Sequence record: OU509535.1 | DNA length: 64,000 nucleotides | Direction: 5' to 3' (one strand) | Shown here: one piece after another, positions 19,704 to 51,368 of the stretch | Layout of the letters: each line of letters begins with the position of its first letter | Numbering within the stretch: the first letter of the stretch is position 1 | Notes under the pieces: model-generated | What the model was told of the DNA's origin: nothing | Database searches by the model: none | Seen by the model: only the letters and a program-made list of their open reading frames with translations | Position numbers and translations under genes: made by a program

Positions 19704-22700
19704 TTATATAACATTTAACAAGTTATTGAGTACCAAACCGTCAATTTTCAATGAATTAGCATACACACTTACATCAATTGGTTTGTAATAATTTTTATAA
19801 ACACTAAAATTAAGTTCAACACCAAGATTGATACCAGTGAATGTATATGTTTCACCTTTAGCAAAATAGTGTTCAGCACTATACATATCTGAACGAAGGA
19901 TATTGTTATTATTTCTCACATGAACTTTTTCATATCCAAGTACTATAATATCATCATAACTAGTACTACCAGTAATGATATTATCCTTAACACTATATGT
20001 ACCAACTGAAACTGGCTCCACCACATAAGTGGTATTTTCATTCTCAACTTTAGTAACACTGGTTACTGTACAAGTTGTATCACCGATATACACTTTATCT
20101 GTTAAATCATATGAGTAAGTCCATCTTACACCATCGAACACAGGTTTAATATCATCGACGTCATATTCATATACAGTAAACTCTAAACTTTCTGGAGTTC
20201 CAATACGAACCAGTTCATCTAATGTACCAACACCGGTATTTGGCATGAAATATCCACTATCAACCACACCATCAGAAGTTTCAACTAACTCATTAGAGAT
20301 TAGCCAAACATCCAAATCTAATGGATCTATTTCATCCGTGTAATCACCATTATTCAAAGAAATATCATAGAATACATCATAGTCCATAACATCAACTCTG
20401 TAATTTCTTATACTTTCATACAACAAATCACCATTGTTATTGAACTCATGGTCTGCAAAACTTCTAATACGAATAACATTTATACTTGTTTTTGTATAAG
20501 GTTCACCAGTATTATTAGTGGTTAAATTATTAAACTCAAGTTTATTTCCATTTGAATCAACCAAAGAATAAACTCCGTTATTAAGCTCAACTTCAAACAT
20601 AATAGGTCGATCATTCTCTTTGATTTTATCAGTACTGAGAATAAGTTCATGAGTAAAGTTCTGGTATCTGTAATAATCATCACCATCTGGGGTAAACACC
20701 ATAACTTTATCACCACTATTGAGATTACTATTTTTCATCAAGAATTCAGTACTGCTTATAATACTATCAATAGTACTGATATAATTATAAGAGTCTTTCT
20801 TAATTACTGTGCGGTTTACATAGTTTTGTACCAGACTATATGGAGGAATGCTCACAATAGCTTCTGTACGCTTGTATGGATTGAGAACAACAAAACCCTC
20901 TATCTGGAATCGACTAAAGTCTTTAATCTGCTGTAGAGATGTAGAATCGTTACTATAGCCATCTACTGTAAAACGCATTTGTGAAATAGCATTAGCACTT
21001 GGGTTCAACTCGGAAATATCAATGAAAACTGATTCAGTCAAATCACCTTCGTAGCTCAGTGCGACAGTTTTATATTGAGATTCCAAACCTAAATTATCAT
21101 AAGCATTCATATCATTATAATACTTCTGCCCCTTGATTCCCTCAAGTACAACCATGTAGTCACTGTACATTGGATTATTATCATCCATTTCCAGATCATC
21201 CATATCAATCTCAACTGCTGTAACTACTGAACCATCAGTAATGAAAAGATCTTCCATATATTCATCAATGCTACGATCATCAGGAATACTAACATAACTA
21301 CCGTTAATATTAAATCTAATATATTTTCTCGGGATCATTACAAATGCCTGAATATCCATTGATTTACGATTACTATTCAGAATATCCTCTGCATATGCAT
21401 AAGGATCATCACTGTCTTTATCAAACGTGTTACGAATAGCAGTTAGTACATGAATAGCATCTTTGTAATAACGACCCTGAGAATCAATATCATATTTGAA
21501 ACAATAGATACCGTATTCAATTTCCATTACGCTTCTGATGGTTTCTTCATCAGCATCTGGTGTTTCTTCCAAAATAAGTTCTCTATAATGGGCGAATAAA
21601 TCCTCACTAATTTCAAAATATCCCATGTTAAAGTCAGAACTTGAACTAAAACCAAAAGGCAATCTCGTATTCGGATTATCATTGTAAATTTCACCACTCA
21701 GACCACAACCAATGGTATCATGGATTACATCTGAACTCATTGAACTATAAAGTTTTAATCTATTACTCAATGTATTATATTGTGAATACATTCTAACATC
21801 TTGTGTTAAGTTAGAAGTACTATACAATTCAGAAGTGATTCTGTCTAAATCAGAAGTGAAACTTTCAGTTCTTTCAGCATCATCAACGTTCAATTTATAC
21901 CATGCATTGATAGCATCAACTAAATCCAGACTTGTATCAAAATCAGAATATAGTTCAAACATATCAACAGAAATCTGAGTATAAATTTCATCTACCTCAA
22001 CAACTGGTAGTGTATACTTGAAACGCTGGATTTCATAGTACTGTACATTATCATCAGAATTACTTACATACTTAGCATTGTTCTCTTCCAGACTTGTAAC
22101 ATCATATAAATCACTATCAGGCTGGCATTGAACATTATCAAATTGCATTGAGATATCAATTTCCTGGAATTTTCTATCTGGGTAAACGAAGTCGTTTGGT
22201 ATTGAACCAACTACCACCCATTGTCCAGTACTTTCATTATATTCAGCATATTCATAATCCCAAATATCAGATTGTGTTTTAACCCAAATTGTACCGTTAT
22301 ATTCATAACCATTTGGATCTAAATCATTACAAACACCATAAACATAATCAGTGTCGGATGTTTTCTGTTCAATTTGAGAACGAATTTTAGTCCTGTACGG
22401 TTTAACTTCATTGAAATATTCAATAATCTGATTAATCAATTCGTCATTAGTGTAATTTTGTTTAAGTGATTGTTCTAACCCAACAATATAAATGTATGAA
22501 GTTTTGAATACCCAATCAACCACACCCTGTTCAACGTGTACATATTTAACCATGTCAAATACAATATTACTTTGAGCTAAATCGAATGAATTTTTGATTA
22601 AATCTAATGCACTTCTTACATTAATTTCCTTGTTGCTTAAAGAACCATCACTGTTATAAACTTCATACCCATCATATAAAGATGAATTAAGAGCAATTGT

Positions 22701-25700
22701 GCTGTTTTGACGCCCAATAGCATTCCAGAATACAGTATTACGTGATGATGTTTTCACATACATTGTCCAACCATCTGAATCAGTGATTCGAATAACATCA
22801 CCAACTTGATAGTTTTTGGTATTAGCTATATCCAGGCTGGCTTCCTGTGTATAATCAGTATTTTCATCATACCCATCACTATACCAGTCAGCATATTCCC
22901 AGTACTGGGTCATGTCAAGAGAAGTACCAAGTGATTCAACATAATCACTCTGTTTAATCATACTATGTTGTCCTTCACCTAGACCTTCCAGTGTGATTGT
23001 TGATGGATTAGCATCAGTACTCTTTGTAGTCATGAATCTTATATAACCATTACTATCGTAGTGGACGAAATATACTGAAGTTGTATCTAGCGGGGATGGT
23101 AATACACCAGTACTACTCAAAATTACTGCATCGTTTTCATCGAATTTATCAAAATCAGTTGAGACAACAAATTCGTTATTGTATGCCAGAACTCTGAATG
23201 TAACTGAATTTTCATTCACCTCAGTAGTTTTAACATTGAAAACTTCACTCATTAATACCGTATCAGTTATGATATTTTGTGTTTTGTAATAATTATTTGC
23301 ACTATCTACAAACGTTCTGCGAGCTTCAATCAAATCCATAAACCAGGTTTTAGATGAACCCAACCCTAATTCTACATCAGGATAAACAATTTCATTTACT
23401 ACACCACTCTTCGTGGTTTCGTGTCCTTTCAGTGAATTCCACAGAGAATTCCATATATCTGAATTGAAATTGTAGCTATCTCCTTCTTTACATAGCTGAT
23501 ATTGTTCATGTTTAATAATATCAACACTATCTTCATGATAAGAAACTGTCAAAATGCTGGTATCATCAGTAATTTCATATTGCATATTACTAAGAATGAA
23601 TGAATTCTCGTTAATTGGTGCAAACCAAGGAACGTCCAGTAAATGTGGATCTTTAATAATACGTGCAATATCAGTACATGATTTACTTCTGGTGTTAATT
23701 GGTGGTACATAAATTGTATCTCTTACCCAGAAATAATAATACGTAACATATGAATCAGTTGTTTCATCATACTCAATGAATGAAGTATAATTATCCATGA
23801 TTGCAGTACCAGAAGGTATATACATAGTGTTATTTTTATTATTTTTAGTTTGTTCCTGACAGTATTTGTCCCAATTATATGGCTGTACTGGAGATTTAAC
23901 CCACTCAAGAACATTAATATCACTATGTGGTAGCAATCTACCCCAGTTATAACGACGATATTCATTTGTAGCATCTTCATCAATGTCACCATTCTCATCC
24001 AGTACTGGGCGAGTGTAATCCAAATAAAATGCAGTACTGGTGTCCCACCATACTTGACCAACTTTCTCAGAACCCCATGCTTGAATAGTTTCTCCATTGC
24101 TATTGTACTGAGCAGGGTCTACTGGAGAGATATAAGATACATCTTTCATTGCAGTCCCAGGTAAAACACCATTAATTGGGTCAAATATATTAAGATATAA
24201 TTCAGTAATGTTTGTTTTTGAATTATAAGTAGATGGTCTATCAAATAAAGTACTATCTGGAACATCAAAACTGTATTTTTTATCAATATATGCCTGGCGT
24301 TCGGTTGTATCACTGAATCTGGATGTATATTTGTACAGTTTTGGTCTTGTATCTGGATCAGTGAAATTAATTGTGATACTTGTATCAAACGGAACAACAA
24401 TTTTAGTTTTATCATCACCTGCCGTGAAATATTGACTTTCTACTGTTAATGCATCTGGCATAAAATATGTATCATCAACAAAATAATAATAATCACCATC
24501 ATCTAATGGAGCTTCGGCATCTAATTGAACAGTACAGTACTGTTCAGCATAAGTATCAGTATTTTCAATTGGAGTAATTGATAACATAGATACACCAGTA
24601 TCAACTAAATCAAAAATGTTCCATTCCTGATTCATATCAACGAACATCCACACTGAATCTGGATTTTCACCATTATTTTTAATATAATTCATGCGGTCTT
24701 CATATGAATCCTGATAAGTCCATGTAGTATAAGATACTTCATTTAAATTAACTGGGCCAATATCAGGTAAATGGATATTATCACTCTTTCCTGAACGCAT
24801 CGGAAAGCGGAATTTACCTTTAGGACGAGTAATCCATCTGGAATCTTCACCTTGTGAACCATAATAAACTATTTCAGTACTACTTGTACTTGTATTAACA
24901 TCTTTATTAAACGTAACCAGTTGTGGTTCTTGTTTAAAATCACTGTTAATTAATTGAAATTGTAAATTTTTCTTGGCATTAACGTTTCCATAAGTACCAA
25001 CTTTAAAAGCCCACTCTTGTAGTGCTTTATATTCATCAGTATTATATGATTTAGATACACGAAGAACGCGTTCCATTACCAAATTAGAGCCTTTATCTCT
25101 AATAAAACCACGATAAAAATCAACACGGTTGGGATTATTAGTGATCATTTGCTGTAAGTAATCACGAGTTTGATATCCAATAACATGAGTACTTAGATCA
25201 TACAGTTGAACATCAGAAACAGGATCATTTGAATCATAATAATGTTGGAAATTAGTAACTAATGTTTCAAATGATGGTAATGTACCAGCTTCAAGAATTA
25301 TAAATCCGGGTGCTTGTAGGCGACCAACCCAGCTATCAGTGATATAACCGTACATTTTCACCAATTCCTGAATAGAACCGAATGTAGGTTGATAAATGCT
25401 ATCACCAAAAATAGTTTTATCATCAAATACCACTGCATGTTCCCATGAACATACACCTAAACGAACCAACGCCATGCGTTTATCGACATCTTCATTAACT
25501 CTAACAGTGAAAACATTACCAATTCTTGATGTTTCAACTTCATATGGGTAGATACCACTGTTATCATCGTCCAACAGACTCCAGACACCACCATTTGTTT
25601 CACTAATACTTTGTACTGAGCCAAAATAAGTTCCGAATTTGGCATTTTTAGAGCTTGGTGTACATGAAATGTAATCACCAATGGTTAAATCTGTGGTACT

Positions 25701-28700
25701 CCATTGTAAAAAGTACTTAGCAATAGTAGACCAGTCCTGTTGTACCCCAGTGTCATCAACATCTTCAAAAATCCATCCATGTTCAACAAGATATTGACCA
25801 TATCCACACAGGAATGTATAAACATCCTGGAATGTGTTAAGAATAGATCCATATTCAAGCGTATCATCTTCTTTCCATTCCATATAATGAACAACAGTGC
25901 GATTTCCTTCAGTTACGGTTACTTTTTTACCATTTTTAACTGGTAATTTATAAGTAAACGTAGCATTAACCAAATCATAACCTTTAATAATATAATTACT
26001 ACCATTGAAAGTGATTTTAACTGCACTAAGAACTTCATTTTTGATATTATTAGAGCGTACCAGTCCGATTGTTTGGTTTTCTTGTGAAATTAAACCAAAC
26101 GATTCAGATGTAAATGTTAATTCATTGCTCTTTGTAAATCCACCAAGCTTGTGTGCAATACTTATGTATGAAGTTCTAACTAAATCACCATATTTTGAAG
26201 TAATATTCTTACTTTGATAGGTTAAGTAGTTACTAACAGCCATTTGATAACCAAGAACACGAGTATTATTCTCACCATGAACCACCGTATCTGAATTAAA
26301 ATTCAGTCTAGTTCTGGTTTCTTTGTACTGCAATTGTAAACCACCAGTTTTTACAGTTTTTAGTGTATCATTTAGTGTATCCCAGAAATAATTACAGAAT
26401 TGTGCTGGTTTTGCACGATATATCTGCATCATTACATCATAACTAAACATTGCGTTATTCATATAGGTGAATTCATTGTCACCCATATCACCATAAGACC
26501 ATGGTGCACTGCGTTCTTTGATCGTACCTTTTACTAAACCAAGAACGTCAGGTTGAATATAATCAACGGTACAAATTTCTTTACCATTAGTTGAATATTC
26601 ACCGGTTTTAGTAATTACAAATGGTTGAGTACCAAAACGCTTGTACTTATCATGCTGTCCCTTACGATCTCCATATAAAATGGTACCAGTACTGGCATCA
26701 CCTTTAACACCATTAACATCCCAAAGACCACTTGGTACTAATTCACCACTTTCATTAACAACCAATGCTTCATATACATATAAAATGTCATCTTCATTCG
26801 TGCCTACCTGAACTTCAGTTGGTTCATATTCCTGATTCCACCAGGTTGGACGAACACCAAAGCCAAACATTTCCCATGGATGAGTTGCAGGGCGATAAGT
26901 ACCGAATTGATCAGTATAAATGGCACGCCAAGAACCACGGGCAGGAAAATCGGTAATTACACCATTAACTGTATAATAGGTACCACTATAATTCCACGTC
27001 ATCCAGTTTTGTTGGTCATAATTATGAGTAGTACTGTCAATTCCGTTAGTTGCAATGAAATTAATATATCCACGTAGTAATAATTCATCACGTTCTTCTG
27101 CACTATACTCAGTATCCCTGTAATATGGTGTTGGAAACAGGTCTGAACTATCAAGTTCAGGTTGATAATCTTCATCTTTGAATGTATTATCAATGCTGTT
27201 GTAAATTCTTGTCTCAAGTTCATAGATAACATCATCCATTTTATCTACACCGTTAATAACTCGATAAGATTTGGTAATTTCACCAGTATGGCGAATGTTA
27301 TATGGTACTTGTTTTGATGCCGCAGTCAGATATACAGTTTTTTCTGGTTTATGTACTTTAAGAACACCCATAAATTGTGGTGTAGGTGGAATAAAAGTAC
27401 GAATTGTAGTTGTAGTACTCCCTACGCCATCGTAATAGAACGCAAAAGTAGAATCTTTACCAACATTGATGTTACTCAAAATAGTATCACAAATATCACT
27501 ACTTGAAGTGCTTAAAAATTTACTTGGGTCTTCTTTATACATATTAAGCATGTAGTTTTCAAATCTGTTATTAAAACGAAGATATTCACCTTGTAAAAAC
27601 ATTAATGCTTCAAAAAGATCAATATCACTATTAGCAGTATGTGCCATTAGTGGAAGTAGTGATCCTTCGTTTTGAATAATTTTAGTACCAACAGCGTTAT
27701 CAACTAACCCTTGTTCAAGACGTTCTTCATAATCATTGATATTATCCACGGCACCAGATGTGATATTTTTTTGTACAATTTCCTGAAAATGTAAAGTATA
27801 ATTACTTTGATCAATATAAGAAATATTATCACTATATGGGTTATTTTGTAAATTTACTGGAATTTCATAACTACCAAGATCGGTATCTGGTACTTCAGTA
27901 CTACTATAAGTTCTGATTTGAATCACACTTTCAGAGTCCAAATCAACAGAGTCACCAATGGTGATGCTTTGTACTTTACCATTAGACACATTTCTTGTAT
28001 AATCTTCAACTACAACACCATTGACCTGAATTTCAATGATATCTGAACTTCCATCAATGACTTTTTGTGCCAGTTCATAACTGCGGTTATACAATTCACT
28101 CTGAATACCTTCAGTGTTTACCATATGCCAGTCATAATAAGTTTCAGATTCTTCTTTGTAGTATTGATAGGTTGCATTGGTTTCAATAACATATGCATAC
28201 ATACCATCAATGGCTTGACTGGAAAAGCTTTCCATTTCATATACAGTACTGAACACTCTGTACATATCAGTGCGTTCAATTTGAGGTGTTTGTTTTACAA
28301 ATTGTTTAGAAAATTCAGTACTACGAACCCAGTCAGTTTTTAATACACTATCTTCATCACCAATGATATTGTAATAATAAAATCCTGGGATTTCTTTAGT
28401 TTCACCCGAACTGATGTATTCATAACGAGTACTTTCAATAAAATTTTCGTATATATAATAATTATAATCACCCAATTCTACATTATATCCATAATAACTA
28501 TCAACTTTATAGTTGTAGTTAATTTTTAGTCCAAACAGAGAAGAACCACTGAATGTACTTGACGGATATACAGTACTATCTTGTAATTTTACACCATTTC
28601 GATCATATAACTGGAAAAGAGGGAATGCATTTGTTCCATTCTTTTTCTGAGTTGCAATCCAGTTATGCCCATTCCAGTACATAGTGGTATTTCCATAAAC

Positions 28701-29672
28701 TTTACCACTTTTAATTAATACAACATCACCATCAAGTGGTTCACCACTTACACGTTCTGGTGTTTCTTCATCTGGGTCTAATGCTAAACCATAAACGCGA
28801 GTACCATCCTGCATTTGGTTGATGTATACTTTATAAATTCTGTTATTTTCACCACTGTTACCAATGCTGGTAAAAAGAATACGCATTCCGTCTAATGGGA
28901 TTTGTCCATCAATACGAATACCCTGATTAATATCTTTTTGTGCGATATCTTCTGGTTTTAATGAATCACTTAGTAGATCCACCACACCACGGAACTGTGT
29001 ACCAAAATTCATTAGTTCGATATCTTTGTTATATTCAATAATTGGTACTTGTGCACGTACAAAACGATTATCATATGATAATTCATCATTCAGTACTGAA
29101 CCATCTGGTAAAGTATCACCAATGGTATACCAGAAGTTTTGTAATGACCATAAGTTTCCGTTTTTAGCATTACGTTGCATTACAACATAATCAGGACTAG
29201 CGATACCATATTCATTTTCAGTATCCCAAAGATATGAACTAAAATTAATCATTTTATTTGGATTAATTGGTGGAGTCCATGAATAAATTCTTGAATTAAA
29301 CAGTCGGCTTTGATTATCAGTAATTGCACCATAATGATTCATATAAGAAACCAGATCATCATAGAATTCAATACTACGAATACTTTGATCTACATTACGG
29401 GAGACATAAGCTGGAGATAACTGATATGCTTGGCGTGGTTGTGTTGATTCATTAACGAAAATCTTGCCACTCGCTGCTGGAGAACCCATATCACCAAGAT
29501 ACCCATCAACTATTTTTTGTTCAGTGGGATTAAAGAATTGTTGAATAACATCATCACATACCTTTTGGATATCTTCCAAGCCTTGCATCCATTCTGGTAA
29601 TCTCTTAATGAACAACTTTTGTTGTACTGCTTCAGCCGTTTTTGTTGGTTGAAACTTAAAATCATTAGCCAT
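19704..29672 (-). CDS. giant (~3,320 aa) baseplate wedge-like virion protein (gp7 position)
   Basis: Uninterrupted ~10-kb ORF directly after the gp6-like gene; probable start MANDF at 29672 behind a GGAG SD. Confidence 0.75.
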   Translation of the reverse strand: MANDFKFQPTKTAEAVQQKLFIKRLPEWMQGLEDIQKVCDDVIQQFFNPTEQKIVDGYLGDMGSPAASGKIFVNESTQPRQAYQLSPAYVSRNVDQSIRSIEFYDDLVSYMNHYGAITDNQSRLFNSRIYSWTPPINPNKMINFSSYLWDTENEYGIASPDYVVMQRNAKNGNLWSLQNFWYTIGDTLPDGSVLNDELSYDNRFVRAQVPIIEYNKDIELMNFGTQFRGVVDLLSDSLKPEDIAQKDINQGIRIDGQIPLDGMRILFTSIGNSGENNRIYKVYINQMQDGTRVYGLALDPDEETPERVSGEPLDGDVVLIKSGKVYGNTTMYWNGHNWIATQKKNGTNAFPLFQLYDRNGVKLQDSTVYPSSTFSGSSLFGLKINYNYKVDSYYGYNVELGDYNYYIYENFIESTRYEYISSGETKEIPGFYYYNIIGDEDSVLKTDWVRSTEFSKQFVKQTPQIERTDMYRVFSTVYEMESFSSQAIDGMYAYVIETNATYQYYKEESETYYDWHMVNTEGIQSELYNRSYELAQKVIDGSSDIIEIQVNGVVVEDYTRNVSNGKVQSITIGDSVDLDSESVIQIRTYSSTEVPDTDLGSYEIPVNLQNNPYSDNISYIDQSNYTLHFQEIVQKNITSGAVDNINDYEERLEQGLVDNAVGTKIIQNEGSLLPLMAHTANSDIDLFEALMFLQGEYLRFNNRFENYMLNMYKEDPSKFLSTSSSDICDTILSNINVGKDSTFAFYYDGVGSTTTTIRTFIPPTPQFMGVLKVHKPEKTVYLTAASKQVPYNIRHTGEITKSYRVINGVDKMDDVIYELETRIYNSIDNTFKDEDYQPELDSSDLFPTPYYRDTEYSAEERDELLLRGYINFIATNGIDSTTHNYDQQNWMTWNYSGTYYTVNGVITDFPARGSWRAIYTDQFGTYRPATHPWEMFGFGVRPTWWNQEYEPTEVQVGTNEDDILYVYEALVVNESGELVPSGLWDVNGVKGDASTGTILYGDRKGQHDKYKRFGTQPFVITKTGEYSTNGKEICTVDYIQPDVLGLVKGTIKERSAPWSYGDMGDNEFTYMNNAMFSYDVMMQIYRAKPAQFCNYFWDTLNDTLKTVKTGGLQLQYKETRTRLNFNSDTVVHGENNTRVLGYQMAVSNYLTYQSKNITSKYGDLVRTSYISIAHKLGGFTKSNELTFTSESFGLISQENQTIGLVRSNNIKNEVLSAVKITFNGSNYIIKGYDLVNATFTYKLPVKNGKKVTVTEGNRTVVHYMEWKEDDTLEYGSILNTFQDVYTFLCGYGQYLVEHGWIFEDVDDTGVQQDWSTIAKYFLQWSTTDLTIGDYISCTPSSKNAKFGTYFGSVQSISETNGGVWSLLDDDNSGIYPYEVETSRIGNVFTVRVNEDVDKRMALVRLGVCSWEHAVVFDDKTIFGDSIYQPTFGSIQELVKMYGYITDSWVGRLQAPGFIILEAGTLPSFETLVTNFQHYYDSNDPVSDVQLYDLSTHVIGYQTRDYLQQMITNNPNRVDFYRGFIRDKGSNLVMERVLRVSKSYNTDEYKALQEWAFKVGTYGNVNAKKNLQFQLINSDFKQEPQLVTFNKDVNTSTSSTEIVYYGSQGEDSRWITRPKGKFRFPMRSGKSDNIHLPDIGPVNLNEVSYTTWTYQDSYEDRMNYIKNNGENPDSVWMFVDMNQEWNIFDLVDTGVSMLSITPIENTDTYAEQYCTVQLDAEAPLDDGDYYYFVDDTYFMPDALTVESQYFTAGDDKTKIVVPFDTSITINFTDPDTRPKLYKYTSRFSDTTERQAYIDKKYSFDVPDSTLFDRPSTYNSKTNITELYLNIFDPINGVLPGTAMKDVSYISPVDPAQYNSNGETIQAWGSEKVGQVWWDTSTAFYLDYTRPVLDENGDIDEDATNEYRRYNWGRLLPHSDINVLEWVKSPVQPYNWDKYCQEQTKNNKNNTMYIPSGTAIMDNYTSFIEYDETTDSYVTYYYFWVRDTIYVPPINTRSKSCTDIARIIKDPHLLDVPWFAPINENSFILSNMQYEITDDTSILTVSYHEDSVDIIKHEQYQLCKEGDSYNFNSDIWNSLWNSLKGHETTKSGVVNEIVYPDVELGLGSSKTWFMDLIEARRTFVDSANNYYKTQNIITDTVLMSEVFNVKTTEVNENSVTFRVLAYNNEFVVSTDFDKFDENDAVILSSTGVLPSPLDTTSVYFVHYDSNGYIRFMTTKSTDANPSTITLEGLGEGQHSMIKQSDYVESLGTSLDMTQYWEYADWYSDGYDENTDYTQEASLDIANTKNYQVGDVIRITDSDGWTMYVKTSSRNTVFWNAIGRQNSTIALNSSLYDGYEVYNSDGSLSNKEINVRSALDLIKNSFDLAQSNIVFDMVKYVHVEQGVVDWVFKTSYIYIVGLEQSLKQNYTNDELINQIIEYFNEVKPYRTKIRSQIEQKTSDTDYVYGVCNDLDPNGYEYNGTIWVKTQSDIWDYEYAEYNESTGQWVVVGSIPNDFVYPDRKFQEIDISMQFDNVQCQPDSDLYDVTSLEENNAKYVSNSDDNVQYYEIQRFKYTLPVVEVDEIYTQISVDMFELYSDFDTSLDLVDAINAWYKLNVDDAERTESFTSDLDRITSELYSTSNLTQDVRMYSQYNTLSNRLKLYSSMSSDVIHDTIGCGLSGEIYNDNPNTRLPFGFSSSSDFNMGYFEISEDLFAHYRELILEETPDADEETIRSVMEIEYGIYCFKYDIDSQGRYYKDAIHVLTAIRNTFDKDSDDPYAYAEDILNSNRKSMDIQAFVMIPRKYIRFNINGSYVSIPDDRSIDEYMEDLFITDGSVVTAVEIDMDDLEMDDNNPMYSDYMVVLEGIKGQKYYNDMNAYDNLGLESQYKTVALSYEGDLTESVFIDISELNPSANAISQMRFTVDGYSNDSTSLQQIKDFSRFQIEGFVVLNPYKRTEAIVSIPPYSLVQNYVNRTVIKKDSYNYISTIDSIISSTEFLMKNSNLNSGDKVMVFTPDGDDYYRYQNFTHELILSTDKIKENDRPIMFEVELNNGVYSLVDSNGNKLEFNNLTTNNTGEPYTKTSINVIRIRSFADHEFNNNGDLLYESIRNYRVDVMDYDVFYDISLNNGDYTDEIDPLDLDVWLISNELVETSDGVVDSGYFMPNTGVGTLDELVRIGTPESLEFTVYEYDVDDIKPVFDGVRWTYSYDLTDKVYIGDTTCTVTSVTKVENENTTYVVEPVSVGTYSVKDNIITGSTSYDDIIVLGYEKVHVRNNNNILRSDMYSAEHYFAKGETYTFTGINLGVELNFSVYKNYYKPIDVSVYANSLKIDGLVLNNLLNVI

Positions 29673-29722
29673 GTTTAGCTCCATAAATTCTTTCTTATAT
29701 CATATGTTTTTATTTATTACAT

Positions 29723-46373: not shown

Positions 46374-46403
46374 AAAAGGGGAGCATATTAGCTCCCCTTT
46401 TTT
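46372..46403. terminator. bidirectional terminator
   Basis: A6-GGGGAGC-ATATTA-GCTCCCC-T6. Confidence 0.85.
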
Positions 46404-47419
46404 ATTATTGTCATAATTTCATTCAAAGATGTAGGTGATACGGTTTCGGTCCACCCATCACCGAATAATTCTTTTGTTAAGTGTCTTGCTTTTATGGTTC
46501 TTTTTATTTCTTTTTCTATGTTAAATGCATCATTACAATTTTCATATACTTTGTGGTATACAACATTCAATTTGTACTTACATTTATTTTTATATGAACC
46601 CATTCTGTGTTTGATATTCTTTGTTATACCGAATTTATAACCAACTATATTATTATAATCATCAGATACTTCTAAAATGTATATACCTGAACTAAAATCA
46701 GAAGATTTATAACCATTTTTGTAACTAACAGAATTACACAAAGGACACCCTTTATCTCGCATAAAATTGTCATATGTCATAGACCATGTATAATTGCATT
46801 TACAAGTTAAAATGACTTTACTAAAAACACCATTAAAGTTCTTTTCATCTATTAATTCAAATTTAATGCCAGTTTCTTTGCTTTTAATTTTTAAATTCTC
46901 ATTTAATTCATTTATACTGTATTTGTGAGTACCTGAACATTTCAAACAACCAATATTATTACTGAAAAATGAGTCATAAGTGGTAGTATTCCATTCGTAT
47001 GCTTCAGAATGTTTAGTATTGTCATTGCATTTTAGTTTTAAATATGTTTTTGTTTTATTATATTCATCAAAACCGAGGAATTCCAGTGTCCCACCTCGTT
47101 TAATGCATTCATTTTCCACATTTTGAATTAAAATTTCAGGTGTTAACTTATTCAATGAAGGCTTTCTGAACTTTTTTGATTCTATATTTCTCAGATATCT
47201 ATATAATTTGTTAATTCTGTAATTATTATAAGTTATATTATCATGTGTTATTGAAGTAAGTGTATTATTACCTAACCATTTTTCTTCAATAATGAATCCA
47301 TTGAATTTTATATTAAATTTGGATAACCTTTTCGATAAATCGTTGAAATATTCCAATGGAGTTCTGGAATTATAGTTAATGTGAACTAAAATAATATCAT
47401 CTGGTAAAGATATTATCAT
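46388..47419 (-). CDS. zinc-finger-repeat protein with C-terminal GIY-YIG-like domain (putative homing endonuclease)
   Basis: C..CxxC modules; C-terminal GIYIL...YKFGIT...R...E...GWTE. Confidence 0.75.
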   Translation of the reverse strand: MIISLPDDIILVHINYNSRTPLEYFNDLSKRLSKFNIKFNGFIIEEKWLGNNTLTSITHDNITYNNYRINKLYRYLRNIESKKFRKPSLNKLTPEILIQNVENECIKRGGTLEFLGFDEYNKTKTYLKLKCNDNTKHSEAYEWNTTTYDSFFSNNIGCLKCSGTHKYSINELNENLKIKSKETGIKFELIDEKNFNGVFSKVILTCKCNYTWSMTYDNFMRDKGCPLCNSVSYKNGYKSSDFSSGIYILEVSDDYNNIVGYKFGITKNIKHRMGSYKNKCKYKLNVVYHKVYENCNDAFNIEKEIKRTIKARHLTKELFGDGWTETVSPTSLNEIMTIIKKGS

Positions 47420-48035: not shown

Positions 48036-48073
48036 AAAATAGGTCAGTACTGAAAAGTACTGACCTATTTTTT
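48036..48073. terminator. 16-bp-stem bidirectional terminator built from two AGTACT sites
   Basis: AAAATAGGTCAGTACT-GAAA-AGTACTGACCTATTTT. Confidence 0.85.
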
Positions 48074-48080
48074 TCTGATT

Positions 48081-48296
48081 TTATCGCCCCTCATTTTGTT
48101 TACGGACTTTCTTGTTGTATGCTTTAACCATCAAGTCTCGTTCAGTTACTGGCATATTAAGTAACATTTCATACGAGGTATTATCAATATATACAGCAGC
48201 TTCCATTAATGCTTGTTTAATTTCTTGCTGATTAAACTCTATGTCTCGTATGTATTTTTCTATTTCAGTTGCCTCTAACTGGAGAAGCTGAGATCG
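48081..48296 (-). CDS. gp51-like segment not in the ORF track; likely C-terminal extension of the gp26-like protein by -1 frameshift
   Basis: The -1 frame reads RSQLLQLEATEIEKYIRDIEFNQQEIKQALMEAAVYIDNTSYEMLLNMPVTERDLMVKAYNKKVRKQNEGR*. Its first ATG is only at 48206 and has no evident SD. Confidence 0.65.
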   Translation of the reverse strand, partial: RSQLLQLEATEIEKYIRDIEFNQQEIKQALMEAAVYIDNTSYEMLLNMPVTERDLMVKAYNKKVRKQNEGR

Positions 48297-49135
48297 AAAA
48301 AACGGGTAATATCATACACCAAATCTTCAATAACCCATTCATGATTACATTCACTACATTCAACCTGCATCGTGTGTTCAACACCAGTATTTTGCATTGT
48401 GTTGATTTCATCCTGAATAGTTTTAAGAACGTCTTTTGACTGATCTCCTACCCATTCTGAAATAAATTCTCGTTCAGTCACTTCATCCCCGTCTGGAGTG
48501 ATAATTTTAGAGATACTATAAACGATACCGTCGAAGTTAATTTTAGTGATAGGTTCAAAAATATCAGAAATGAATAGTTTTGCTCGGTCTTCATCACTTA
48601 ACGACTCATCTAAATCGAGATATTTGGATTTGGACTGAATATTGAACATTCGCTCATTTATATCACATTGTTCTTTCCATGTAAGTGGTTTAAGTTCAAT
48701 ACTTAATCCATTATTTAAAACTACAGTAGGGATTTCTTTAATATATTTTACTGTATTCAATAGCACATTCAAATCACGTTCGATACGACCTTCATGGTCA
48801 CATTCGGGACATTTTACATTAATATCATAAGTATATTCTTTGGTTGCAACTTTAATTGCAATAAGCAGTTGTTCGATATCATTGATGTATAATTCATCTG
48901 CATTAAGGACGTTCGGGCAGCAATTTTCAATAACTCGTGATACCGCATCCCCGGACATAAGCATATCAGGAGTATTCAGTACTATTTCATCACGAGCACT
49001 GCGAGCACACACCCCAACTTTAATACCTTTATTTCCTAATACACCATCGGGATATTTAATTACATCATTTGAAATAAGTTTAGCACTAAGTACTTCAATT
49101 TTTGTGTACTTGGCTAGTGGGTTCATCTTACTCAT
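48275..49135 (-). CDS. gp26-like baseplate hub/tail assembly protein
   Basis: MNPLAKY...SARDEIVLNTPDMLMSG...DIEQLLIAIKVAT...CPEC...CSEC; start at ATG 49135 behind a GGAG SD. Confidence 0.8.
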   Translation of the reverse strand: MSKMNPLAKYTKIEVLSAKLISNDVIKYPDGVLGNKGIKVGVCARSARDEIVLNTPDMLMSGDAVSRVIENCCPNVLNADELYINDIEQLLIAIKVATKEYTYDINVKCPECDHEGRIERDLNVLLNTVKYIKEIPTVVLNNGLSIELKPLTWKEQCDINERMFNIQSKSKYLDLDESLSDEDRAKLFISDIFEPITKINFDGIVYSISKIITPDGDEVTEREFISEWVGDQSKDVLKTIQDEINTMQNTGVEHTMQVECSECNHEWVIEDLVYDITRFFDLSFSS

Positions 49136-49177
49136 AAAGACTCCAATCAATGAACAAAATAAATAATCTATATGACA

Positions 49178-49189
49178 TATTTATAAATG
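49178..49189. promoter_or_regulatory. overlapping divergent late promoters
   Basis: TATAAATA on - (49178-49185) overlaps TATAAATG on + (49182-49189). Confidence 0.55.
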
Positions 49190-49205: not shown

Positions 49206-51368
49206 ATGGCTGGTACAAGTACGGATTATCTATTACAACAATTGTTAACCAGTAATGAAAAAGCTAATGATAATTTATCTGCGATGAGAGATTTATTATC
49301 AGAAAATTTGAAAAAAAACGGTTCAAATAATAACAATAATAATAATCCAGGAAACGGAAATAATAGAAGAAAGAAAGAAAAGATATCATTAAATGATGCT
49401 TTAAAAAATATATCCAGAGATGTTAGTGGATTTAGTAGAACTCTCATTAACGGTAGTGCGGATGTTGGAACTGTTACGAATTCGCTTGGTACCGGAATGA
49501 GTAGTGTAATCGGTACATTAGGAAAGGCTGTTCCAGCTATTAGTGGTGTAACTACTGCATTCCAGTTACTAATTGAAGCAGGACTATCTGTTTATAATTA
49601 TCTAAATCAACAACTGGAAATGTATAATAAAATTAATTCCAGTGGTGTTAGTTTATCAAATGGTATGAACTCTATTCGTACTGGTAGTGCTAATGCGTTA
49701 ATGAGTATGGACAAATTCGGTAATTCCGTAGTAAAACATGCTGGTGTTATTGCACAATTAAATGGTATATACGGTGATGGTGTTAAGGAATATGGTGATT
49801 TGCTTGGAACATTACAATTAGCACAGGATAAAATAGGTATATATGGTGTATCACAGGAACAAATGGCAGACTTAACCGCGAGGAATATTAAATTCCAGAA
49901 ACAATTTGGTGGTGCAGAATTAATTAGACAAACTAACCAGGAAAAAAGCACACAAGAATTTATTAAAAATATGACATCTTTTAGTAAATCAATGGGTGAA
50001 TCAGTTGATGCAATTTTAAAGAAAACTCAGGATTTTGATAATTCACTTGATGCTCGTGGTTTAGAAGCTGCATTGGAAAACTGGGCTGGATTAAGTAATA
50101 AAGCTGCTACATTAACTACTGATGCATTTATTCAAGCCGCTGCTGGTATGGGCGATGCAGGAAAATCTTTTTTTAAAATAATTTCATCACAAGCTGTCAC
50201 TGGTGCATTACCCACTGAATATATGACTGGTGTTATTGCAGAATTTGCCGAAGAAAACAAAAAAATGTTTATGGGTGGTATTACTGATGCAAAGGAAATA
50301 CGCTCAGCTAACATCAAATGGGTTAGAATGCATAAAGATCAGATTAAGCGTGACATGATGAACCAGATACAACTTGGAAACATCGAAGCTGCTAACTTCA
50401 ACCGAAATCTTCTTGATCTGGAAGCGTCTGCAAATGATCCAAAAAATGGACCAAAACAACGTTTAGAGGAATTAACTAATAGATTTAATAATTGGATTAG
50501 TAATACATTTATAAAGCCATTTAATCTTTTAATGGATGCTGGGGTTACATGGTTATTAGATATTTCAGATCAAACAACATCATTTAACCAATTTATATCT
50601 ACTGTATTCAGTCAGGGAATCGACAAAATAATGAGTATGGTAACTAACTTTTTTAAGAACTTTCCAGTACTTAGTGATATAGGAAAAACTTTATTCGGTG
50701 ATTCTTATAATACATTGGTTGATAATGTTGGTGGTTTTATTGGTAATTTAGTAAAAATACCTATACAACTGATATCAGTTGTAACAGATATATGGAATGG
50801 TAATTTAGCTGGTGCAAGGGAAACTGTACAAAATGCAATTGCTTCATTTAAACAGAATTTCTTGGGTATGTGGGAAGGTATAAAAGATATCAAATTCAGT
50901 TTCAGTGACGTTAAAGACCGCTTGGTTAATATTGTAGAAACACTAAAAAATAAATTAATTAATGCATTTGACATTCTTAAATATGTTTTCGGTGTCAGTG
51001 ATGAAATGCCAAAAACTGAAAATACAAAAACACCAAGTGCTGAAAAACCAAAAAATGAAAACATAAATACACCCAGTAACAGTAAACCGACTGTTAATGA
51101 TAATAACAGAAAACAACCACAAGTTGATCAAAATGCTTCTAATTATACCCCACCAACTCGTGTGGATGAAGCTCAAGATAATTACAAAAAATCTCCTGAT
51201 GATGAAAAAGTTGATAATAATTTACAACCAGTAAATTACGATGAATCAATGGTTGAATTATTAGGACGTGTAACATCTGCGTTAGAAAAAGCTAACGAAT
51301 ACAATGTACAGAATTCAAATTATCTTAGAACTATATCTGATAATACTCAAATACAACGTAATAGTTAA
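49206..51368 (+). CDS. putative tape measure protein (gp29-like)
   Basis: 720 aa, helical, A/G/S-rich with aromatic periodicity and a low-complexity C-terminal region. Confidence 0.7.
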   Translation: MAGTSTDYLLQQLLTSNEKANDNLSAMRDLLSENLKKNGSNNNNNNNPGNGNNRRKKEKISLNDALKNISRDVSGFSRTLINGSADVGTVTNSLGTGMSSVIGTLGKAVPAISGVTTAFQLLIEAGLSVYNYLNQQLEMYNKINSSGVSLSNGMNSIRTGSANALMSMDKFGNSVVKHAGVIAQLNGIYGDGVKEYGDLLGTLQLAQDKIGIYGVSQEQMADLTARNIKFQKQFGGAELIRQTNQEKSTQEFIKNMTSFSKSMGESVDAILKKTQDFDNSLDARGLEAALENWAGLSNKAATLTTDAFIQAAAGMGDAGKSFFKIISSQAVTGALPTEYMTGVIAEFAEENKKMFMGGITDAKEIRSANIKWVRMHKDQIKRDMMNQIQLGNIEAANFNRNLLDLEASANDPKNGPKQRLEELTNRFNNWISNTFIKPFNLLMDAGVTWLLDISDQTTSFNQFISTVFSQGIDKIMSMVTNFFKNFPVLSDIGKTLFGDSYNTLVDNVGGFIGNLVKIPIQLISVVTDIWNGNLAGARETVQNAIASFKQNFLGMWEGIKDIKFSFSDVKDRLVNIVETLKNKLINAFDILKYVFGVSDEMPKTENTKTPSAEKPKNENINTPSNSKPTVNDNNRKQPQVDQNASNYTPPTRVDEAQDNYKKSPDDEKVDNNLQPVNYDESMVELLGRVTSALEKANEYNVQNSNYLRTISDNTQIQRNS

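Follow-up and report, generated by a model that had tools for sequence, protein, structure and literature searches.

The locus at positions 48081 to 49135 of a 64,000-nucleotide (nt) stretch of sequence record OU509535.1, the whole of which is called the window here, raised the question of whether a gene for a baseplate-hub assembly protein is read in one frame or in two. Close to its 3' end the gene contains a slippery heptamer, and a second frame without a start codon near its beginning continues well past the stop codon. The initial annotation, made from the letters of the sequence, had proposed that a programmed -1 frameshift fuses the gp26-like open reading frame (ORF) to this startless frame. 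After comparison with the homologous region of other phages we consider it likely that a conserved programmed -1 ribosomal frameshift operates in the gene. The elements on which this reading depends were located as follows.

48275 to 49135, minus strand: 0-frame gene for the short form, a baseplate-hub assembly protein of the PF12322 (T4 gp26/gp51) family, 286 amino acids (aa), taken from the ORF and its translation.

48296 to 48302, minus strand: slippery heptamer T TTT TTC (last base of the Arg278 codon, Phe279 and Phe280), read directly.

48275 to 48311, minus strand: stretch with both frames open, from the -1-frame TGA at 48314-48312 to the 0-frame TAG; the shift must fall here.

48081 to 48296, minus strand: -1-frame extension, an open frame of 71 codons plus TAA at 48083-48081, predicted to be the alpha-helical tail of the long form.

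48036 to 48071, both strands: bidirectional terminator-like hairpin of 16 pairs, seen in the sequence, beginning 9 nt past the -1-frame stop.

The 0-frame ORF started with ATG at 49135, which was preceded by GGAG at 49144-49141, and stopped with TAG at 48277-48275. Codons 278 to 280 read CGT TTT TTC and formed an in-frame X XXY YYZ heptamer, with the 0-frame stop six codons after it. The -1 frame was closed by the TGA, open from 48311, and ran for 71 codons beyond the slip codons until the TAA. Its first ATG, GTG or TTG was found at 48206, 30 codons into the tail, with no GGAG-like or Shine-Dalgarno motif upstream. The heptamer, the closing TGA, the start at 48206 without a Shine-Dalgarno sequence and the final TAA had all been described before, and direct reading confirmed each of them. 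The product sizes given earlier, 286 aa and about 351 aa, also agreed with simple arithmetic (280 + 71 = 351 aa for the long form). The hairpin follows the -1-frame TAA, and the transcription unit would therefore reach past the -1 ORF and not merely to the 0-frame stop. Without the -1 ORF, about 200 nt of sequence between the 0-frame stop and the terminator would be unexplained.

The heptamer taken alone was within chance, as 31 copies of T TTT TTC were observed in the window against 33 expected for AT-rich DNA. What goes beyond chance is its position inside a frame overlap of 36 nt and its conservation in every relative. The 1.5-kb region around the gene was 100% identical to the unannotated Klebsiella phage assembly OU509535.1 and 99.2-99.9% identical to phages Muenster, KP13-7, K64-1 and RaK2 (genus Alcyoneusvirus, about 346 kb). 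By this nucleotide identity the window is assigned to a RaK2/K64-1-type Klebsiella jumbo myovirus, and the jumbo-phage origin assumed in the initial annotation was correct.

For the comparison, the homologous region was collected from 17 diverse phage loci, and a scan of IMG/VR with a family alignment contributed 53 more. The 17 loci came from 121Q, EJP2, A4, Munch, CBB, BF, GAP32, fHe-Yen9-04, XbC2, XaC1, Vibrio 2.275.O, the Agrobacterium phage Atu_ph07, the Pseudomonas phage PA5oct, the Xanthomonas phage XacN1 and IMG/VR contigs. Altogether 68 loci could be evaluated and gave 48 distinct junctions, which formed 28, 12 and 5 clusters at protein identities of 70%, 50% and 35% and extended down to about 21% identity to the window. 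An in-frame heptamer was present in 68 of 68 loci; counted by distinct junction, it was TTTTTTC in 44 of 48 and TTTTTTT in 4 of 48. The codon before the heptamer always ended in T, and eight different codons were used there (AAT, AGT, CAT, CTT, CGT, TAT, GCT and GGT). In all evaluable loci the 0-frame stop followed 1 to 11 codons past the heptamer, its position being variable. A homologous -1 tail of 69 to 79 codons was likewise found in all 68 loci, with E values of 1e-8 to 1e-38 against a hidden Markov model (HMM) of the tail. Conservation of the heptamer and of the -1 ORF in related jumbo phages had been suggested as a check on the frameshift, and both were kept without exception.

The start of the tail was as well defined as its length. 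Residues 1, 4 and 5 were R, L and L in 41, 44 and 39 of the 48 junctions, respectively, so conservation starts at the junction, from the first -1 codon. When the tail of the window was used in a tblastn search, the alignment began at residue 1 in all 74 matching phage records. In 36 of 48 junctions at least 12 codons of the conserved tail preceded the first ATG, GTG or TTG; in 8 it fell within the first six codons of the tail, and in 3 upstream of the tail's first codon. The tail of PA5oct had no start codon at all.

Protein collections gave the same division. Among 5.8 billion proteins 67 clusters of full-length homologues were found, all of 276-298 aa and ending 1-15 residues past the Phe-Phe pair encoded by the slip site; both Phe residues were invariant in 39 aligned homologues. 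A profile of the tail, searched against 1.84 billion representative proteins, matched only proteins of 41-67 aa. No in-frame fused homologue was detected among the 5.8 billion proteins or the 1.84 billion representatives, and judging from these collections such a version seems not to exist. The proposed fusion of the gp26-like ORF to the startless ORF thus received strong comparative support from 68 of 68 loci and from the lack of an in-frame fusion. At the level of comparative genomics the frameshift is, on this evidence, real and deeply conserved across the jumbo-phage clade.

The signals for expression of the gene were found directly upstream of it.

49141 to 49185, minus strand: TATAAATA at 49185-49178 and GGAG at 49144-49141 ahead of the ATG at 49135, read directly; the function as a promoter is presumed.

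The motif TATAAATA (49178-49185, minus strand) was situated in a divergent intergenic region of 70 nt, 43 nt 5' of the start codon of the gp26-like gene. We take it to be the T4 late-promoter consensus, and its presence upstream of the gene suggests late expression. Ribosomes translating the PF12322 gene, whose mRNA is probably a late one, would hold tRNA-Phe on UUU-UUC (codons 279-280), and a fraction of them would move back by one base onto U-UUU-UU. Ribosomes that stay in frame would meet the stop six codons on and release the short form. Those that slip would add 71 more codons and produce the long form, in which the 280-residue N-terminal body is shared and an alpha-helical tail follows. 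We infer the ribosomal nature of the shift, the ratio of the two products and the functions of both.

Tandem slippage of two tRNA-Phe at UUU-UUC is plausible because the heptamer belongs to an efficient -1 class in E. coli. Heptamers of the type H_HH.U_UU.Y are among the most efficient -1 motifs there, and U_UU.U_UU.C gives measurable shifting without stimulators and is used in insertion sequence (IS) elements (Sharma et al., PMC4066793). The site is similar to those of the IS3/IS1 transposases and of dnaX of E. coli, which are X XXY YYZ heptamers and include U_UU.U_UU.C (PMC4066793). At those sites a hairpin often follows 5-9 nt downstream (PMC4066793), whereas strong structure was found here only in some lineages. 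Downstream RNA was evaluated by unconstrained minimum-free-energy folds of a 45-nt segment, compared with segments of the same gene. In 12 of 48 junctions, against 2.4 expected, the downstream segment was among the most stable 5% of its own gene. Strong folds were obtained for Atu_ph07 (-16.6 kcal/mol), PA5oct (-13.8 kcal/mol) and several marine contigs (-12 to -17 kcal/mol), and a stimulatory downstream structure may be present in some lineages. On inspection no Shine-Dalgarno-like element was seen upstream of the heptamer of the window.

The 286-aa protein was readily assigned to a family. It matched Pfam PF12322 ('T4_baseplate') over residues 59-272 with E=2e-20 and 73.8 bits against a cut-off of 24.5, and phrog_150 ('baseplate hub') with E=1.6e-30. 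The AlphaFold model of the short form had a predicted local distance difference test score (pLDDT) of 89 and a predicted template modelling score of 0.85, and the residues past Phe-Phe were disordered. When this model was compared with BFVD, T4-like baseplate hub assembly proteins were matched with a best E of 1e-25, and the matches at E<=0.001 numbered 67. Those that bear the name 'Baseplate hub assembly protein, bacteriophage T4-like' reached a template modelling score of 0.86 with E=3e-22. Judged by these models, the short form shares its fold with the T4-like hub assembly proteins. The PDB, searched with the main protein by sequence and by fold, contained no solved structure with a significant match. 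In T4, gp26 and gp51 act in hub assembly, and gp51 is absent from the finished particle (PMC3004832). A homologue of the PF12322 protein was not listed in the part of the CBB virion proteome table that was available to us.

The tail was modelled with a pLDDT of 87 as a long helix (residues 2-38), a short one (42-46) and a second long one (52-69). Its only match among the PHROGs was phrog_18291, of unknown function, with E=5.5e-31. No match was obtained in Pfam (in a set without PF28602) or NCBIfam, nor with Foldseek for the tail model against BFVD.

T4 gp26 (208 aa) and gp51 (249 aa) are encoded by divergently transcribed genes, and both matched PF12322 and phrog_150, from which we conclude that they are paralogues. 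The two differed in how far they extended: gp26 reached position 235 of the 282 positions of the profile and ended 3 residues past Phe-Phe, while gp51 reached position 280 and carried about 48 additional C-terminal residues, marked as PF28602 in precomputed annotations. The jumbo-phage protein is like the T4 proteins in family (by HMM), in predicted fold and in the conserved Phe-Phe at the end of the domain, beyond which the short form has 6 residues. It differs from them in being about 70-80 aa longer on the N-terminal side, and its identity to them is too low for BLASTP or phmmer. In T4 there are two divergent paralogous genes and no frameshift, and also an internal-start product, 26'. The Phe-Phe of T4 gene 26 is encoded in GAG TTC TTT, a non-slippery sequence, and gene 25 comes directly after gene 26. 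A codon-usage control with T4-type gene 26 loci contained only two informative sequences.

The jumbo-phage tails were compared with the C-terminal part of gp51 by hhalign. With 16 tails and 40 gp51 sequences, the last 30 columns of both were aligned with a score of 24.1 (P=0.002, probability 13%); none of 300 column shuffles reached this score (mean 12.3, standard deviation 2.2, maximum 19.9). The larger comparison, of 49 tails against 93 gp51 sequences, scored 22.8, which was reached by 1 of 200 shuffles; P was about 0.002-0.003 across both comparisons. In a global alignment a Leu-Leu...Pro-acidic-Glu-Ile motif was lined up at the start of the jumbo-phage and gp51 tails. In architecture the short form would correspond to T4 gp26 and the long form to T4 gp51, and one recoded gene would supply both hub-assembly factors, for which T4 has two paralogous genes.

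Several results weigh against this reading. The likeness of the tail to gp51 was weak, with hhalign probabilities of 11-13%. A BLASTP comparison of the tail with T4 gp51 and gp26 was not significant, and no link was provided by PHROG or BFVD either. Homology of the -1 tail to the C-terminal tail of gp51 is suggestive, not conclusive. The gp51-like character given to the tail in the initial annotation was therefore upheld in part: the collinear alignment and the build of gp51 as PF12322 plus a C-terminal tail are in its favor, and the weakness of the alignment and the negative BLASTP, PHROG and BFVD results are against it. An HMM built from jumbo-phage sequences only failed to detect T4 gp26 or gp51. 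The pair of gp26 and gp51 genes that had been postulated for this phage was not found; a single gene of the family seems to give both forms. No second PF12322 ORF was present among the 30 ORFs of the window (Pfam scan) or in the remaining pieces of the identical phage genome (home-made HMMs), and the home-made HMMs used for this genome-wide search have a limited reach and could miss a divergent paralogue. The long, transframe product was not reported in the phage proteome papers that were consulted. In 121Q (locus L002, 3825-3835), and similarly in XbC2, BF and fHe-Yen9-04, an ATG in the frame of the tail shares bases with the 0-frame stop (TAATG) at a place where the window has CAG; in such relatives separate initiation is possible, and the tail could be made by slippage and reinitiation both.

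The downstream RNA structure of the window itself was weak and did not stand out. One candidate stimulator was recognized.

48271 to 48288, minus strand: weak hairpin of 6 bp, GCUUCU/AGAGGC, 7 nt past the heptamer, a putative stimulator from the minimum-free-energy fold.

The 45-nt stretch downstream of the heptamer ranked at the 23rd percentile of segments of the same gene. A 5-bp CAGTT/AACTG hairpin, which had been put forward as a feature of the frameshift, does exist (48281-48266, 14 nt past the heptamer) and overlaps the preferred 6-bp hairpin. It was not the preferred fold, neither hairpin was more stable than the controls, and this part of the proposal was not supported. The two alternative hairpins (48296-48266, minus strand) share bases, and a pseudoknot can be drawn in which the first loop pairs with the sequence right after. 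This pseudoknot would have no connecting loop, looks sterically unlikely and is not conserved in 121Q.

Of the other explanations, the one given most weight concerns what the two products do. They could be a lambda G/GT-type tail assembly chaperone pair that acts on a neighboring tape measure protein, which we regard as possible but doubtful. In lambda, a -1 shift close to the gene's 3' end gives gpG and gpGT, two products with a common N-terminal part (PMC5009743), and a conserved -1 frameshift of tail assembly chaperone genes has been described (Xu, Hendrix and Duda 2004, as cited in PMC9024508). The jumbo-phage gene follows the same logic: in a tail-assembly gene, a heptamer with a -1 shift close to the 3' end would give a short and a C-terminally extended protein, here judged by anatomy and conservation only. 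Moreover, gp26 and gp51 of T4 are counted among the hub assembly chaperones, assembly requires gp51, and the T4 hub contains the tape measure gp29 (PMC3004832). The neighbor in question was the following gene.

49206 to 51368, plus strand: divergent neighbor encoding a virion structural protein of 720 aa, a putative tape measure, from phrog_14121 ('virion structural protein') and a note of the RaK2 depositor on similarity to tape measure.

RaK2 has a tail of 128 nm, with which, by a rough estimate, the length of the neighbor is presumably compatible. A protein of the CBB virion proteome, CBB_251, was represented by 29 peptides, and it was equated with the neighbor through locus numbering only. 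The identification of the neighbor as the tape measure, made in the initial annotation, goes back to the depositor's note of similarity and could not be substantiated: there was no match in Pfam, no match among PDB sequences and no significant match to T4 gp29. The gene is also divergent from this neighbor, not directly upstream of it in the same orientation, and, unlike the lambda G/GT gene, it does not lie in one operon between genes for the tube and the tape measure. In Atu_ph07 gp701 is annotated as the tape measure and gp686 is the hub gene, and the two do not adjoin each other. Membership in the chaperone families was not supported either. The 286-aa protein matched no chaperone family in Pfam, PHROGs or NCBIfam, and its family is that of the hub-assembly proteins of T4-type phages, with no detectable homology to lambda gpG/gpGT. 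The structural comparison with tail assembly chaperones that had been suggested earlier gave no significant match; the HK97 chaperone 2ob9 was at rank 3 in the PDB comparison with E=0.95 and probability 0.16.

Transcriptional slippage was less well supported and is unlikely. In this case RNA polymerase would add one U in the T6/T7 run, and a fraction of the mRNAs would encode the same fusion protein in one frame. The conserved element is indeed a run of 6-7 T, lengthened by the preceding T, and runs of 7 identical bases have been noted as prone to slippage (PMC4066793). The run is nevertheless short, and its register was X XXY YYZ in every case. About 8-9 bases are needed for E. coli RNA polymerase to slip efficiently. 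The last base of the heptamer was C in 44 of 48 junctions, although TTT also encodes Phe and would give a longer run, and this argues for a ribosomal over a transcriptional mechanism.

It is very improbable that the downstream ORF is a separate small gene of 41-69 aa, translated by initiation of its own or by termination-reinitiation, as it appears in GenBank annotation. Gene callers do predict such small ORFs, and in 121Q, XbC2, BF and Yen9-04 an ATG overlaps or adjoins the 0-frame stop. The positions of the start codons given above, among them the late start in the window without a Shine-Dalgarno sequence and the startless tail of PA5oct, together with conservation from the first -1 codon, are very hard to reconcile with separate initiation; the frame relation was always -1 and the heptamer always present. 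A homopolymer sequencing error or a recently inactivated pseudogene, which the break in a T run, where indel errors typically arise, and the extra break in one UNVERIFIED record might suggest, has a negligible probability and was rejected, as the same split in 68 loci from independent isolates and metagenomes and in 67 protein clusters, with no in-frame version, excludes it.

The preferred reading, a programmed ribosomal shift in a hub-assembly gene, had been said to be invisible to standard annotation, and this held for the records inspected. None of about 20 annotated GenBank records marked slippage; the tail region contained nothing, a short ORF from an internal ATG, or an ORF on the opposite strand. 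In phage Muenster (locus L003, 2670-2789, about 48111-48230 of the window) a 39-aa ORF on the opposite strand was annotated over the tail region, most likely a spurious call caused by the unrecognized frameshift. For the homologue in Yersinia phage fHe-Yen9-04 (locus L013, 1501-2376) RefSeq gives the name 'Lead, cadmium, zinc and mercury transporting ATPase', and some JGI copies of the homologue are named 'ribosomal protein S27E'. The ATPase name is an evident misannotation that was probably triggered by CxxC zinc-ribbon motifs, and the same probably applies to the S27E name. The record of Escherichia phage CMSTMSU, which is marked UNVERIFIED, has the family gene split in two, with one frame break beyond the conserved one, probably an assembly or sequencing error.

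Other features of the window were noted in passing. A 343-aa ORF carrying T5orf172/MUG113 together with a treble-clef zinc finger (DUF4379) at 46388-47419 (minus strand) was placed between EndoVII-like and gp46-like genes, where 121Q has no gene; it looks like an insertion of the homing-endonuclease type. DUF4379 was also present in a second ORF of the window. In the structural region a very large ORF of 3326 aa was found at 19704-29684 (minus strand).

An earlier description of this frameshift was not found in the searchable literature, a search outside which most subscription journals lie. The recoding is of a known kind, here in a different protein family, and it pairs T4 genes 26 and 51 as short and long forms. 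The recoded gene extends across a clade of jumbo phages that infect Klebsiella, Escherichia, Salmonella, Erwinia, Yersinia, Serratia, Cronobacter, Pectobacterium, Xanthomonas, Vibrio, Agrobacterium and Pseudomonas, and is present in many environmental contigs; in every record inspected it was annotated wrongly or not at all. Quite tentatively, PF12322 could be the T4-superfamily counterpart of the G/GT principle, in which initiation of the hub and tail would always depend on two forms, a short one and a rarer long one that has a helical tail, provided by a -1 frameshift in RaK2-like phages or by the gene duplication 26/51 in T4. If true, this would account for the small, 'catalytic' amounts in which gp51 acts and for its absence from virions. 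The long-enigmatic T4 genes 26 and 51 would be linked as short and long versions of one ancestral design, which offers a testable handle on the function of gp51 and suggests that the two-product scheme of lambda-like tail assembly also holds for contractile-tail phages of the T4 lineage.

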